From contig NIVC01000361.1 of assembly GCA_002269645.1 (NCBI GenBank), positions 135,388-199,387 on the forward strand: 64,000 bases of DNA, in the 5' to 3' direction. The position numbers and the translations under genes were made by a program. Within the stretch, counting starts at the first letter, position 1. Each line of letters begins with the position of its first letter. The stretch is from Macrostomum lignano. Its lineage: Eukaryota. This document shows positions 57,313 to 63,300 of the stretch, one piece after another. The notes under the pieces are model-generated. The model made no database searches and was not told the DNA's origin. It saw nothing but the letters and a program-made list of their open reading frames with translations.

Positions 57313-60300
57313 ATGACAATCAACTTCACCGGGTTCTGCAAAAACGTCTTTTTCGTAAGATCCTAGACCTTAATTTTTTTCTAGCATTGTGACGCATTAA
57401 GATTCAGCATAAAAGGTACTAATAAACTTGATCGTCTCTGTCACTGTCTCTATATAGGACGAGGCAGTGAGCTGGAACAGCGCCAGGCCCGTGTTCAGTG
57501 ACTGTTTCTGCAAGTCCGCGCTCGCACTGCCTTCAGCTGCGCTGCTGCTCCTCTTCATTCCGTATCTCGTGTACCTCAGGTCCTTCCCGAGCTACTCGGT
57601 CAGATGGACTCGACTGTTCACTGCCAAAGTGGTGAGTCTCGTTCATACAGGCATGGAGCAAATCCACTAGTAATGACTCCTTATAATGTCGATCAATGAC
57701 GGGTAAAGCAAAGGTGACACGAGAATTGCGCAACCATCCACAGCTGGTGTCAGCACTGCTGGTCGTCGCTCCATTCATGGACCTGCTGAAGGCTGCGTCG
57801 CAAGAGGCGAGCGGAGAAGAGCCGGACGCGATCAGCTACGTGTCGCCGAGTGTTCTGGTAGTGGCGTTGGTGAGTGCGGACTGACGAGAGCGTTGTGAGA
57901 GATTGAGAAGCTGTGACAGACACCTCAAAACTGTGACACACACACACATTCCAGATTGTGTGTCTGGTTGTGCAATCGGTGGAGCAGAAGAGGCTGATTG
58001 GAGCATCAGCGATGATGTTCTTCTTCTACATGATGTCTCTGGTGGTGTCGGTTCCCGTGTTGTACACCAGGATCATCATGTCCTCGGATGCTGTAAGTGA
58101 AGCGGTATGCTGCTTTTTAAATGGTTACTTTTACTCATAACTATGAGTACCCGAAAAGTTCTTCCCACAATTATAAGTGGCTCATCCAGCAATTTGGAAT
58201 TCTTGCAGGGCTCAGTTTTAGACGTCTACGGTTTGACGACGTTCTCATCGTACTTGGCTCTGCTGCTGACTCAGCTGGTCCTCACCTGTATCTACGACTC
58301 CGGTCTGACGCCTGCAGACGAGGCGGACGACTCTCCGACTGCGACTGGGTCGGTGGGAGCGGCAGGAGCGGTGCCAGCGGCAGAGCGACAGCCGGTGTTC
58401 GCCGAGTGCCGCTCGTCAATCATTTCGCGACTGACGTTTTCCTGGCTTGACCGATCCGTGCTGAACGCGTACAGGAAGGAGATCGGAGAGGCGGACGTGA
58501 ACCGGCTAGACCCGTCACTGCGAGTTCGGACTGTGCACGGAGAGTTTGTGCGCTACTTCCCTCCGCTGGTGGCGCTGTCACGAGGCGAGCGTAATGCGGC
58601 CGAGCAGCGAGAGAATCCGAGCTTTACTCATCATCGAGTCAATGCAGACACGGAGCAGCTGGTCGATTCGGGCGACTCGGAGGGCGACCAGCTGCACAGC
58701 AATGACAGTAGAGACGGCGCTAGAGGTCACCACCGACGCAAGCTTCTTCCAGCACTTTGGAAGGCATTCGGAGGCCAGCTGATTCTGTCCTGGTCGATCA
58801 TGATGATCCACGGGTTGTTGGCATTCGCCAATCCGTTTCTCCTGGAAAGTTTGATCAACTTTTCCACCAACGGAGAAGAGCTGTGGCATGGAATTTTGTA
58901 CACTTTTCTCTTCTTTGTGGTAGCCGTATTGAGCAGCATTACTTTTCATGCCTCGTTTCAATTGAGTCTCACCTGCGGAATCAAGTTCCGTTCAGCATTG
59001 ATTGCTTCAATTTACCGCAAGGTAATTATTTTATTTCTATTTCAAAGCGATGTCTGAGTGGTTGCGTTCAAAATACTTTGGCATCAAACCACCAAACTAC
59101 TTCAGTCTTTGACGCTGACACAAGAATCGAGAGCGAGGTCAACAGTTGGCGAAATTGTCAATCTCATGACTGTTGACTCAAACAAAATCGCAGACTCCAT
59201 ACGTAAGGTTTCATTTCAATGAATTTGCAGAAGCCAGATTTTTTGTTCCTAACAAAAACTGAATGTTTCTTTATTAACTGCAGCTTCCTTCTGGGTGGTG
59301 CTGGTGTCTCCAGTCCAAATCGTAATCGCTTTGGTGATGCTGTGGGCTCAGCTTGGCACGGCAGTTCTTGCGGGAATCGGAATTTTCGTTGTGATAATTC
59401 CAGTCAACGGCTACATCATGGCCAAAGCGCAGAAGCTGGAAGAGAAGGAAATGAAGACAAAGGATGAGCGGCTTAAGCTGATTAACGAAGTGCTCAATGC
59501 AATGAAGGTGATCAAGCTGTACGCATGGGAACCATCGTTTCAGCAGAAAATCAGCCACGTACGACGCACAGAAGTGGGATTTTTGGGCCAGATGTCCTAC
59601 CTGTTTTCAGTTGTGATCATCATGTGGACAGTGGCTCCATTCCTCGTGATGGTGCTCACTTTCATCACGTACATCTACTCTGGTGATGATCATATTCTTA
59701 CTGCAAGCAAGGCGTTTGTATCCTTGACGCTTTTCAACATCCTGCGTTTTCCCATCATGGTGCTTCCATTGACAGTTACGCAAACCGTTAATGTAGGTCA
59801 TTTTTCGCAGCGCTTTTCCAATTTTTAGTGTCTAAAAATCTTTTAAACATAGCTTCCATGACTTTTCAAACAGGCCTACGTGTCTATTAAGCGCATCCAG
59901 AGTTTTCTGTTTGAAGACGACATTGATGAGTCGAGTGTTCTGAAGCTTCCAAGCTCTCCAGGTGAGTGGTATCTTGCAGGCATGCACGCTTTATACCTTT
60001 GTGGTGCTTCACGTCCTTGAAAAAATGTTTCAGATGGCAACTCGGTAGAAATCGAAGGCGCCTCTTTTGGATGGAAACGAACTGATTCCGAACCGCTGCT
60101 GAAAGAGTAAGGAGAGGCGTTTAGTTTCGTGGTGCTTACATAAGTAATTTTAAGTACATAAATAACACTAATAGAATGCTTCACTACCAACTTCATGATC
60201 TCCAGCGTGAACATTCAAGTACCTAAAGGTAAACTCATCGCAATTGTTGGCAAAGTCGGTTGCGGAAAGTCGTCTCTGCTGCAATCAGTTTTGGGCGAAA

Positions 60301-63300
60301 CTGTGAAATTCTGTGGCAGAATCACTACTCGGGTGAGTAGTTGAATACATATTTGTGCTTCGTTTGTGGTACTTCTATATCGACGTTTGATAATGCAAAC
60401 GGTGTATGTAAATTCAAGACAGTTCGGGTGAGACGCTGTGTTTGCTTTTTACTGTATGGTCGACTCTCTGTCGAAAAAAGCATCAATAATTAAGTATACT
60501 CAGCAGAAACTGTTTTAAGGAATGTTCAGTGCACTTAATATTAATGAACTCAGTCTAAACGAAACCCAAATGAGCAGGGCTCAGTGGCGTACGTGCCGCA
60601 GGAGGCGTGGATTCAAAACCTGACCGTGAGGGACAACATTCTGTTCGGTCGCGACTTCGACCAAACTCGCTACGATGAAGCATTGCGCGCGTGTCAGCTC
60701 GAAAAGGACCTGCAGCTGCTGACTGCGGGCGATGCGACTGAGATCGGAGAGCGCGGGATCAACCTGTCTGGAGGACAGAAGCAGCGAGTGAGCCTGGCGA
60801 GGGCCGTTTACCAAGACAGCGACATCTACCTACTGGACGATCCTCTGGCAGCCGTGGACTCGCATGTCGGCAAGAAGCTCTTCCACGAGGTCAGCATAAT
60901 GATTCAGAGCCTCTATTGTCTGCAATCAAAGATGGATACAATAGCTCGTAGTTGCTTACTGTATTGTTAATTGTTGGTAAAACCTAAGGATAAACTGGTA
61001 CATTTTAGGTGATTGGAAAGTCTGGTCTTCTTCGTGACAAGACTCGAATTCTCGTCACTCACGGCATTCACTGGTTGCCTCACGTAGACGAGATTGTCGT
61101 CATTGACAACGGTCGCATCAGCGAGCAGGGCAGCTACGAGCATCTGCTGGATCACGATGGACCGTTCGCGAGTTTCCTGAAGGAGTTCTTCCTACATGAC
61201 GGAGAGCGGAAGCGAGCCAGCAGGTCTCGCGACGTCAGCGTCTCGATCGCAGAGATCGCTGCGGCAGCCCCAGAGGAAGAAGAAGAAGACGAAGAGTTGG
61301 CGGCGGAGAAAGCGAAGATCTTGCAGAGACTCGCGAGCTGCACAAGCTCTGCTCACGAAGCAGCTGCAGAGAGTCCGGCTGTGGTTGCAGCGTCTCCAAG
61401 TCAATCTTCGCCACCTCAGCACGCCAGTCAGGCGTCGAGCTCAGTAAACAGCCACTGCTCCGACACTGCCGACAGACTTGACTCGAAGAGGCCTTCGATT
61501 GTGCGCCAAACGTCTAAGTAATTTACCCAGAGGGTTTTCTGCTCAAACATACTGGTACAAAAACTCAGAGCTCGCTCGTTGTCAACGCATGCATGCTTTG
61601 AAATTTCTGTTGCAGGATCAGCCAACTAACATCTGAGAAGCTACCATCGCGTGATGAAGATGTGGACGGTACCAGGAAGGCTGCTGAGCAATCCGGACGG
61701 TTGATTGACGAGGAGACAATGGAATCCGGAAGCGTGTCTCTTAAGTCGTATGTATTTTACATCGCAGCTCGTGGATATCATCTGGGTCTGATGACCATAA
61801 TGGCGCATCTCGCTTACACAGCTGTCAACATTGCCAGCAGCGTGTGGCTGTCCACTTGGACTTCAGACCCGCTCTTTTCGAATGCTAGCGTCACTGGAAA
61901 CCTGAACAACTCTGCATACCTTCGAGACATAAATGACTACTACCTCAGCATTTACGGTATCTTCGGAGCAGGAGTTGTTTGCATGGTAGCTTCTTTTGTT
62001 CTTATTGAGGTCTACTCCGCACTGAGAGCATCTCGTTTGATCCACAAGTCTTTGCTGACTCGTCTGTTTCGAGTTCCGATGAGTTTCTTCGATACCACAC
62101 CGACTGGTCGAATCGTTAACAGGTTCAGCAAGGACATGGAAGTTGTTGATCGAGAGCTGCCGATGATAGTCAACGATAACTTGGAAAGCTTTATGGCCAC
62201 AGTGTCTTGCATAATTGTCATTTCGTACACGACGCCAATATTTCTTGCCGCAGTAGTTCCTCTCGGATTATCTACGCAGGTATTCAGGTTTTCTACCTGC
62301 CCATCTCTCGGCAAAGCCGTCGTTTGGACTCGAGATCGCGATCTCCGATACTCACAACTTCAGCGAGTCCATCGCTGGCGCGGCGGTCATTCGAGCGTTC
62401 CGTCAGCAGCAGCGGTTTGTCGGAATATCAGACTATCGAGTTGATAACAATTCAAGGTGAGAAGCAGATTGATTTTGAGAATTCATTTATTGTTTGTTGC
62501 ATATAAAAATGGGTATTAAAAAGTCAACAGCTAGGTGATCCAGGTAGGCGTTGTACAGTATTACTCGTATGCATTGAAGGTGACTTATGGAAACTGTACC
62601 GTTAGAAAGCGGAAAGAATCCGCAAAAACTAAATTTCAATTAAGTCCTATGGCTGTAACAAGCTTCAGTCAGTCTCACTGATTTATTGTCTTTGTGTATG
62701 ACTTTATATTCTCGTAAAAAATCATCGCAGGTTTTACTTCCTAAAGCTGGCTTCAAACAGGTGGCTCGGCTTCAGATTGGAACTTCTTGGAACAGCTGCA
62801 GTGGTGATTGCCGCTTTGCTAGCGGTCCTTGGTCGCGACTCGCTGACTCCCGGTCTCGTTGGACTGTCTGTGTCTTACGCTCTTCAAATATCTGACTACC
62901 TTCAGTGGTTGGTGCATGAGTTGACAGAATTGGAGACCAACACCGTGGCTGTGGAGCGGCTTAACGAGTACTCAAACTGAGACGGAGGCGCCGTGGACAA
63001 CGGACTCGCTGCCTCCCTCTGGCTGGCCTTCGAGAGGTCGAGTCGAGTTCTGTAACTACGCCACTCGCTATCGACCGGGACTCGATCTGGTGCTGCAGGG
63101 CATCAGCGTGAGCTTTGAGCCGGGTCACAAAGTGGGGATTGTGGGTCGAACTGGAGCGGGGAAGAGCAGCCTCACGCTGGGCCTGTTCCGTCTGATCGAG
63201 TCGGCCTTTGGCCACATCGAGGTGGACGGAGTCCGAATCGACCGGCTGGGCCTGCACTCGTTGCGCTCAGCTCTGACCATCCTGCCGCAGGAGCCGACTG

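Follow-up and report, generated by a model that had tools for sequence, protein, structure and literature searches.

The question raised by a 64,000-nucleotide stretch of Macrostomum lignano DNA (contig NIVC01000361.1 of assembly GCA_002269645.1, positions 135,388 to 199,387 of the forward strand; hereafter the window) is whether short patches on the transmembrane helices (TM) of two almost identical transporter genes give their products different substrate specificities. The window contains four paralogous genes of the ABCC1/MRP type in a mirror arrangement, with A (23226..29660) and B (32873..42538) on the minus strand and C (44122..50334) and D (57313..63781, 14 exons) on the plus strand. 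A and D, near-identical and inverted with respect to each other, are the outer pair of the cluster, and B and C, used here as outgroups, are the inner pair. An initial annotation, made from the sequence alone, proposed that the patches reflect a specificity-diversifying efflux repertoire. The reading favoured here, with a probability of roughly 0.6, is that A and D form a gene-conversion mosaic in which the islands of D would provide a ligand pocket differing from that of A, B and C, with selection perhaps aiding the survival of the islands.

Exons 2–14 comprise 1620 codons, over which A is separated from D by 144 nucleotide substitutions and 60 amino-acid differences. All four peptide pairs that the annotation had singled out are present in the conceptual translations, at codons 605–617, 1108–1122, 1173–1180 and 1324–1333, and alignment to the solved MRP1 chains places them as proposed, at human residues 594–606 (TM11), 1025–1039 (TM13), 1090–1097 (TM14) and 1241–1250 (TM17). 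The codon index equals the human residue number plus 11 in TM8–11 and plus 83 in the second transmembrane domain (TMD2), where the mapping of TM13 and TM14 uses the ungapped ranges of 8vt4. The statement that the two genes differ mainly in these four patches is correct within the transmembrane domains, which hold 34 of the differences, but over the whole protein the patches hold 24 of the 60 amino-acid differences. Three differences at the start of TM8 and three in TM12 had been missed, two more lie just after TM17, and 21 fall in two disordered linkers, nine of them in the L0 linker and 12 in the linker between nucleotide-binding domain 1 (NBD1) and TMD2.

The differences are far from evenly spread. 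Outside the patches, A and D differ at only 3 of 448 nucleotides in exon 7 and 3 of 634 in exon 13 (0.5–0.7%), while inside the four named patches the divergence reaches 25–43%, which matches that of A/D to B or C (27–31%) and of B to C (35–40%). The clustering is well beyond chance; for the TM13 island, with 17 differences in 40 nucleotides against a background of 0.6%, P is ~1e-27. A scan of the whole A/D alignment revealed 13 islands of 16–91 nucleotides, 20–48% divergent, of which six are exonic, four intronic and three span an exon boundary; those in coding sequence are located on TM8, TM11, TM12, TM13, TM14, TM17, the end of exon 10 and the NBD1–TMD2 linker. Exon sequence outside the islands is 1.3% divergent and intron sequence 1.8%.

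Synonymous sites give the age of the islands. By the Nei–Gojobori method, the synonymous and nonsynonymous divergences in the four patches are 0.41 and 0.24, as compared with 0.048 and 0.011 elsewhere, and they fall to 0.036 and 0.003 when all patches and linkers are removed. The approximately tenfold synonymous excess means that the patches are old sequence embedded in young, homogenised sequence and not the result of recent point mutations. The synonymous differences pointed out in the TM11 patch by the annotation are indeed there (3.5 synonymous and 6.5 nonsynonymous differences were counted), in line with a stretch that was not homogenised. At the sequence level, the patches are demonstrably a product of patchy interlocus gene conversion between the copies. 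Conversion has overwritten almost all of one gene with the other, and its patchiness left the 13 short islands of much older sequence.

The first island (D 59208–59298, plus strand; A 27776–27667, minus strand; 29 of 91 nucleotides) covers mostly intron 6 and runs into the opening codons of exon 7, where TM8 begins; there the equivalent of human MRP1 Y440 is Phe in A and Ser in D and that of M443 is Ala in A and Val in D. The TM11 island (D 59741–59784, plus; A 27224–27181, minus; 11 of 44 nucleotides) brings five amino-acid changes, among them Thr in A and Met in D at the N597 equivalent and Trp in A and Leu in D at the M601 equivalent, while F594 is kept. The coordinates first reported for the exon that carries this island are the limits of open reading frames (ORFs); the exon bounded by GT-AG splice sites is 59284–59792 in D and 27173–27681 in A. 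In TM12 the patch (D 61786–61835, plus; A 25071–25022, minus) has 6 differences in 50 nucleotides and three amino-acid changes, the island proper being 61820–61835. The largest patch, in TM13 (D 61969–62008, plus; A 24888–24849, minus), changes 11 amino acids in a 14-codon stretch (1107–1120); the replacements are contiguous and almost all substitute one hydrophobic residue for another.

The TM14 island (D 62169–62201, plus; A 24688–24656, minus; 10 of 33 nucleotides) encodes IINDFLEC in A and IVNDNLES in D. Its three changes affect the equivalents of I1091, of F1094, where D has Asn for Phe, and of S1097, where it has Ser for Cys; A, B and C are identical at all three. In TM17 and just after it (D 62896–62963, plus; A 24114–24047, minus; 24 of 68 nucleotides) two halves can be distinguished. 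In the first (62896–62925) the equivalents of Y1243 (Ala in A, Tyr in D), N1245 (Asn, Gln), L1247, R1249 (Arg, His) and M1250 (Gln, Glu) change, with A, B and C agreeing at all but the Y1243 position, whereas in the second (62929–62962) D resembles C, from which it differs at 2 of 34 nucleotides. The His of D at the R1249 position had been recognized from the start. Among the other specificity residues to which attention had been drawn, the equivalents of N597, Y1243 and N1245 do differ between A and D, but those of E1089 (Met in both), F594 and W1246 do not.

Two islands in coding sequence lie outside the transmembrane helices. In the NBD1–TMD2 linker (D 61361–61437, plus; A 25495–25419, minus; island proper 61390–61437, 10 of 48 nucleotides) A is identical to C except for one base, while D is unique. 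The other, which straddles the boundary between exon 10 and intron 10 (D 60311–60357), lies at the end of the exon that encodes the NBD1 Walker A motif; its exonic part is mostly synonymous, with a single replacement, Arg in D as opposed to Ser in A and B.

The position of the islands relative to the ligand pocket was assessed with 27 contact positions of human MRP1, pooled from PMC12647609 and PMC8267652. The former describes ten ABCC1 structures and provides contacts for glutathione, vincristine, estrone sulfate, a cyclic dinucleotide and the release site; the latter reproduces a table of the pocket for leukotriene C4 (LTC4), with a P-pocket of K332, H335, L381, F385, Y440, F594, R1197, N1245 and R1249 and an H-pocket of T550, W553, M1093, Y1243 and W1246. 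A and D differ at nine of these 27 positions (the equivalents of Y440, M443, N597, M601, S1097, Y1243, N1245, R1249 and M1250), where about one would be expected. The hypergeometric probability of such an overlap is 2e-7 when the whole protein is considered and 4e-6 when the transmembrane domains alone are; among 612 circular shifts a single one gives as many, and permutation of intact patches gives P ~8e-4. With the LTC4 list alone, 4 of 14 contacts differ (P 0.0013). When the four copies are taken together, 20 of the 27 contacts vary, as compared with 272 of the 612 positions of the transmembrane domains (P 0.0014).

Within the transmembrane domains, as aligned to MRP1, the islands demonstrably favour the replacement of ligand-contact residues, mostly on the side of D. 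Several of these positions are important in the human protein: according to PMC12647609, vincristine efflux is almost lost with the substitutions M601S, Y1243A, M1250A and W1246A, and glutathione export falls sharply with R1249A. The residue states seen here also have precedents in the family, Gln at position 1245 being present in ABCC5 and ABCC6, Ala at 1243 in MRP3 and Tyr at 1243 in MRP1.

With B and C as outgroups, the residue is unique to D at 36 of the 60 sites and to A at 11, and in the patches D is farther from B and C than A is. The TM14 and TM17 residues are identical in A, B and C (Phe and Cys in TM14, LNWMVRQ in TM17 as opposed to LQWLVHE in D), where these copies differ only synonymously; the retention of the residues despite synonymous change indicates that they are constrained in three copies and have been replaced only in D. 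Some of the A/D differences are exchanges with C, which was the donor or the recipient for the linker tract of A and for the tract of D after TM17. As for the other tracts of D, we infer that they would be relics of an older and more divergent D gene, the rest of which was replaced by A-type sequence, or else imports from a paralogue located beyond the window.

The evolutionary pattern itself is well known in other gene families. In the primate red and green opsin genes conversion homogenises the copies except around the spectral-tuning sites, and the RHD/RHCE and MHC genes are comparable. Like these, A and D are near-identical paralogues with short old tracts at specificity residues, inside which the synonymous divergence is raised. 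They differ in that selection in the opsin, RHD/RHCE and MHC genes is backed by population and functional data, while here there is one sequence, with a ratio of nonsynonymous to synonymous divergence (dN/dS) below 1, islands that are commoner in introns and two broken frames. A search of the accessible literature found no description of such a conversion mosaic in ABCC gene clusters.

The annotation also drew a parallel with Drosophila MRP (CG6214), which is said, on the authority of Grailles et al. (2003, Gene), to have mutually exclusive variable internal exons. In both systems a single MRP scaffold is combined with alternative versions of transmembrane segments. The analogy is one of outcome and not of mechanism: the Drosophila gene has tandem alternative exons chosen by splicing, whereas here islands of 16–91 nucleotides distinguish separate, otherwise homogenised copies in which each exon occurs once. 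A model with alternative exons of this type was rejected, as exon-by-exon tblastn finds one copy of each exon per gene and none elsewhere in the window.

A number of findings, taken up in this and the following paragraphs, weigh against the favoured reading. The fraction of alignable columns that lie within islands is 23% in introns and 6% in exons, so the islands are fourfold denser in introns. Together with the presence of at least two tracts that are plain exchanges with C, this makes patchy gene conversion the basic process and selection unnecessary. On such an account the islands are merely the places where conversion tracts ended or were rejected: since local homology is needed for conversion, the most diverged ancestral stretches, namely introns and fast-evolving parts of helices including pocket-lining residues, were left unconverted, and there is no current selection for specificity. 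B and C are likewise diverged above the exon average in the patches (0.52 in TM11, 0.60 in TM12 and 0.55 in TM13, as opposed to 0.35–0.40), the positions of TM12–14 at which A and D differ are more variable among 120 ABCC homologues (mean entropy 2.58 vs 2.09 bits, P 0.02), and the dN/dS of the patches is below 1. However, the overlap with contact positions remains significant if patches are shuffled as intact units inside the transmembrane domains, and the residues of TM14 and TM17, having been kept in A, B and C through synonymous change, are not generally unconstrained sites. A mosaic of this neutral kind is regarded as possible but rather unlikely.

The dN/dS check suggested in the annotation gave a value of about 0.5 for the patches rather than one above 1. 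The individual values are 0.62 for TM11, 1.56 for TM13 (from few sites) and 0.38 for the first half of TM17, while that of TM14 is not computable due to synonymous saturation; the pooled value of 0.49, over 58 codons, has low power, and only TM13 exceeds 1. These values also bear on the possibility that the patches were built in place by positive selection, from new point mutations after a recent duplication of A and D. The TM13 ratio and the concentration of replacements at ligand contacts are what such a process would produce. It is nevertheless very improbable, being contradicted by the synonymous divergence of 0.41 vs 0.048 and by the equal divergence of adjoining intron sequence, as in the mostly intronic island 59208–59298, and the pooled ratio also speaks against it.

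The comparison with the MRP1 pocket has limits of its own. The contact map comes from a protein ~40–45% identical in these domains, a value read roughly from the alignments. No residue of TM13, the largest patch, is named as a ligand contact in the parts of PMC12647609 and PMC8267652 used, and this helix is variable across the 120 ABCC homologues. The equivalent of K332 is already Met in both A and D. The diversification is one-sided, given the preponderance of residues unique to D and the agreement of A, B and C at the pocket sites of TM14 and TM17, and no donor for the D tracts of TM11, TM13, TM14 and the first half of TM17 is found within the window. The proposal of a specificity-diversifying repertoire is supported as far as the enrichment of transmembrane-domain differences at MRP1 contacts goes, but it is weakened by the low dN/dS, by the D-sided pattern and by the state of the reading frames.

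The last of these is the most serious; all statements about it hold for the sequence as assembled. Three frameshifting deletions are found in A and four in D, and B and C are free of them. In exon 2 of A (minus strand) two 1-nucleotide deletions, between 29394/29393 and 29383/29382, lie 12 nucleotides apart, where D, B and C have C and G (57586 and 57598 in D); the frame breaks near codon 43 of the exon, the first stop is at 28533–28531, and all patches of A are downstream. In exon 12 of A a 2-nucleotide deletion (GA) in a GAA repeat, at 25578..25579 on the minus strand, removes bases that are present in D (61276–61277) and C. Exon 13 of D (plus strand) has 1-nucleotide deletions after 62266 and after 62355, the bases being present in A, B and C; the first stop is at 62442–62444, and TM15–17 and NBD2 are out of frame, with the TM17 patch located downstream of the first frameshift. 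In exon 14 of D (plus strand) a 2-nucleotide deletion at 62977–62979 produces an in-frame TGA (62978–62980) where A, B and C read AATCTGGAG, and a 1-nucleotide deletion (GGG to GG) is found at 63675..63676, near the C-terminus of NBD2. Each of these deletions occurs in a single copy, the remaining three being in agreement.

Exon-wise tblastn is in line with this, giving one frame throughout B and C, in which exons 2–14 are each covered in a single reading frame, and split frames in exons 2 and 12 of A and 13 and 14 of D. Neither A nor D, as assembled, has an uninterrupted frame through all exons, and neither encodes a full transporter. The frame of A breaks in exon 2 and that of D in exon 13, ahead of the TM17 patch, and a working repertoire is no more than a proposal. 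Rescue of the frames by alternative splicing was considered and rejected, the deletions being inside exons that are continuously open in the other three copies and the net shifts not being multiples of three.

The frameshifts could mark recent pseudogenes or errors of the assembly. If A and D are both recently dead, the patches are history only, and the working repertoire consists of B and C. The ratio of seven private frameshifting deletions of 1–2 nucleotides in A and D to none in B and C (7:0, P 0.008) is what would be expected, and D alone is odd where human MRP1, A, B and C all share a residue, with Gln replacing Asn at 1245 and His replacing Arg at 1249. However, outside the patches and linkers there are 37 synonymous differences and 9 replacements, with dN/dS 0.08 (background 0.08–0.22), which is unlike neutral decay. 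The deletions sit in stretches free of substitutions, such as 62201–62459 with two deletions and no substitution, and all splice sites and candidate start exons are intact. Private indels relative to substitutions in the introns of homogenised blocks number 5:9 in A and 3:11 in D, as opposed to 2:25 in B and 1:7 in C (P 0.05). This surplus in the outer copies resembles a technical problem with indels, in an inverted repeat whose arms are near-identical, more than it does relaxed selection. The death of both outer genes is a serious possibility, though judged somewhat less than probable.

Technical indels differ from an artefact of the locus as a whole, in which the A/D pair or its patches would be the product of a fold-back or chimeric consensus and not two real loci. 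The mirror symmetry, the near-identity of A and D and the unexplained small indels would all follow from it. Yet the similarity is confined to the genes, the spacers between A and B (3.0 kb) and between C and D (6.8 kb) sharing nothing, and B and C are 35–40% diverged in exons 7 and 13; on these grounds an assembly fold-back or duplication was rejected as the source of the mirror layout. Moreover, A and D are distinguished by large clean intron indels of 239, 157 and 104 base pairs (bp), and the patches keep the frame and the helix character and contain residues known in ABCC proteins (Tyr1243 of MRP1, the corresponding Ala of MRP3 and Gln1245 of ABCC5/6). An artefact of this kind is hardly credible. 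In the clean intron indels, the 239 bp are present only in A, in intron 9 (26849–26611), and the 104 bp of intron 10 (60421–60524) and the 157 bp of intron 13 (62516–62672) only in D.

The reading favoured here, a conversion mosaic with a distinct pocket in D, requires all seven frameshifting deletions to be assembly errors or very recent. Should D be intact and expressed, the island changes would give it a pocket unlike that common to A, B and C, with Tyr for Ala at 1243, Gln for Asn at 1245, His for Arg at 1249, Glu for Gln at 1250, Leu for Trp at 601, Met for Thr at 597 and Ser for Phe at 440. Selection for a pocket difference may have helped the exonic islands to survive homogenisation. 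That the substrate ranges differ functionally and under selection is a reasonable supposition, which depends on the frameshifts being artefacts. For the TM13 patch and the two linker patches a functional explanation is not needed.

A bolder version can be imagined, in which the cluster would act as a combinatorial pocket library: frequent conversion would keep the ATPase engine and scaffold of the four pumps identical while selection would keep short islands, resistant to conversion or shuffled by it, different at the ligand-contact turns of TM8, TM11, TM14 and TM17, the frameshifts again being assembly errors. Near-identical genes would then encode pumps of different substrate range, and the pocket of D (Tyr1243, Gln1245, His1249 and Glu1250 equivalents) would be absent from the other three. 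This version is speculative and rather doubtful.

If the differences are selected and the genes intact, A and D would represent a natural swap experiment, with pumps ~99% identical outside ~30 residues and a third of the MRP1 contacts exchanged. This would indicate directly which of the TM8, TM11, TM14 and TM17 turns set the substrate range in long MRPs, and would mean that concerted evolution and pocket diversification are jointly at work in a detoxification gene cluster. If, instead, the frameshifts are real, the outer genes are two dying copies in a conversion-prone cluster, with patches that have no present function. In either case, near-identical paralogues with clustered differences should be read first as conversion mosaics, by means of synonymous and intron divergence, and the reading frames need to be checked before function is inferred.

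The family identity of the proteins is clear. The conceptual A protein aligns over residues 4–886 to bovine MRP1 20–876 and over 1011–1615 to 939–1531 (E = 0), the C-terminal half aligns to human MRP1 942–1530, and the solved MRP1, MRP2 and MRP3 chains are matched over their full length, from TMD0 to the C-terminus, with E = 0. The domain order TMD0–L0–TMD1–NBD1–TMD2–NBD2 is present, and both NBDs contain the Walker A, signature and Walker B motifs. NBD1 is degenerate, with Asp in place of the catalytic Glu (DDPLAAVD), while NBD2 has the consensus (LDEATAAVD). From the full-length match and this combination of a degenerate NBD1 with a consensus NBD2, the A/D-type proteins are classified as long ABCC exporters of the ABCC1/2/3 type, that is, new proteins in a known family. 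A search for relatives with the exon 13 protein found none above 56% identity, that level being reached by partial matches and near-full-length ones being at ~42%. An exact look-up of the ENaC-type protein encoded nearby had no match, and in a metagenome scan relatives appeared only at 41–55% identity, with no independent copy of the locus among the collections searched.

In both A and D the equivalents of H335, F385, Q450, W553, R593, F594, R1197 and W1246 are kept as in human and bovine MRP1, while K332 is replaced by Met, L381 by Phe, T550 by Ile, M1093 by Asp and E1089 by Met. Other positions of the glutathione/LTC4 pocket are split between the two, in the order A/D: Y440 (Phe/Ser), Y1243 (Ala/Tyr), N1245 (Asn/Gln) and R1249 (Arg/His). 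Since several residues of this pocket are not conserved, the MRP1 substrate class cannot be transferred to the flatworm proteins. They also differ from MRP1, MRP2 and MRP3 in being encoded by four clustered copies that exchange sequence, of which A and D are not intact as assembled. At the K332 equivalent (codon 344 of the A/D alignment) A and D have Met, B has Val and C alone has Lys. K332 is the Lys that binds glutathione in MRP1, and the dependence of the copies on glutathione conjugates may differ at this site, separately from the A/D patches.

The gene model of D, with 14 exons joined by GT-AG introns, was derived from three-frame translations and four-copy alignments, and the exon limits of A were projected through the A/D alignment; all acceptors of A are AG and all its internal donors GT. 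On the plus strand, exons 2–14 of D occupy 57458–57631, 57744–57869, 57955–58092, 58209–59021, 59106–59202, 59284–59792, 59874–59961, 60034–60106, 60206–60332, 60578–60889, 61009–61517, 61616–62456 and 62731–63781. Those of A, on the minus strand, are 29521–29350, 29237–29112, 29026–28889, 28772–27960, 27878–27782, 27681–27173, 27091–27004, 26927–26855, 26513–26387, 26274–25963, 25845–25339, 25241–24399 and 24279–23226. Candidate first exons of 14 codons are located ~100 nucleotides upstream of exon 2 in each copy (D 57313–57354, A 29660–29619, B 42538–42497, C 44122–44163) and read M..NFTGFC..FF followed by GTAAG. Two residues of this exon differ between A and D (MPVN vs MTIN).

Across the cluster the identity between copies is itself a mosaic. 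A and D are 93–96% identical over the whole gene including introns, as judged by blastn. Among all copies, NBD1 is 97–98% and NBD2 92–96% identical, while exons 7 (TM8–11) and 13 (TM12–15) show only ~70% identity between A/D, B and C. At the 5' end, exons 2–4 with their introns approach 100% identity across the four copies (5' exons with introns 93–98%), in a block comprising D 57458–58130, A 29521–28851, B 42404–41730 and C 44279–44955, which indicates a very recent homogenisation of the 5' end of all four genes. The sequence just upstream of exon 2 is unrelated between copies. Between its exons 10 and 11, gene B has an intron of ~3 kb (36099–39108, minus strand) without counterpart in the other three copies, possibly an insertion. 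The C–D spacer contains a 97% inverted repeat (51077–51311 / 52304–52067) and a set of short repeats (53141–53662).

The remainder of the window holds other features. An intact, intronless ORF of 688 residues (1570–3636, plus strand) matches the DEG/ENaC (amiloride-sensitive sodium channel) family (Pfam ASC, E 4e-44); it identifies the window as metazoan and is a 2 kb coding sequence free of frameshifts. Two ORF fragments on the plus strand, 17020–17631 and 19316–20080, match the N- and C-terminal halves of the Major Facilitator Superfamily (MFS) profile and are probably exons of one MFS transporter gene beside the ABCC cluster. Blocks of tandem repeats are present at 8115–8436, 9016–9503, 10638–11207, 11314–11957 and 14702–15324, and one ORF is made of PT repeats (Pfam PT, E 4e-46).

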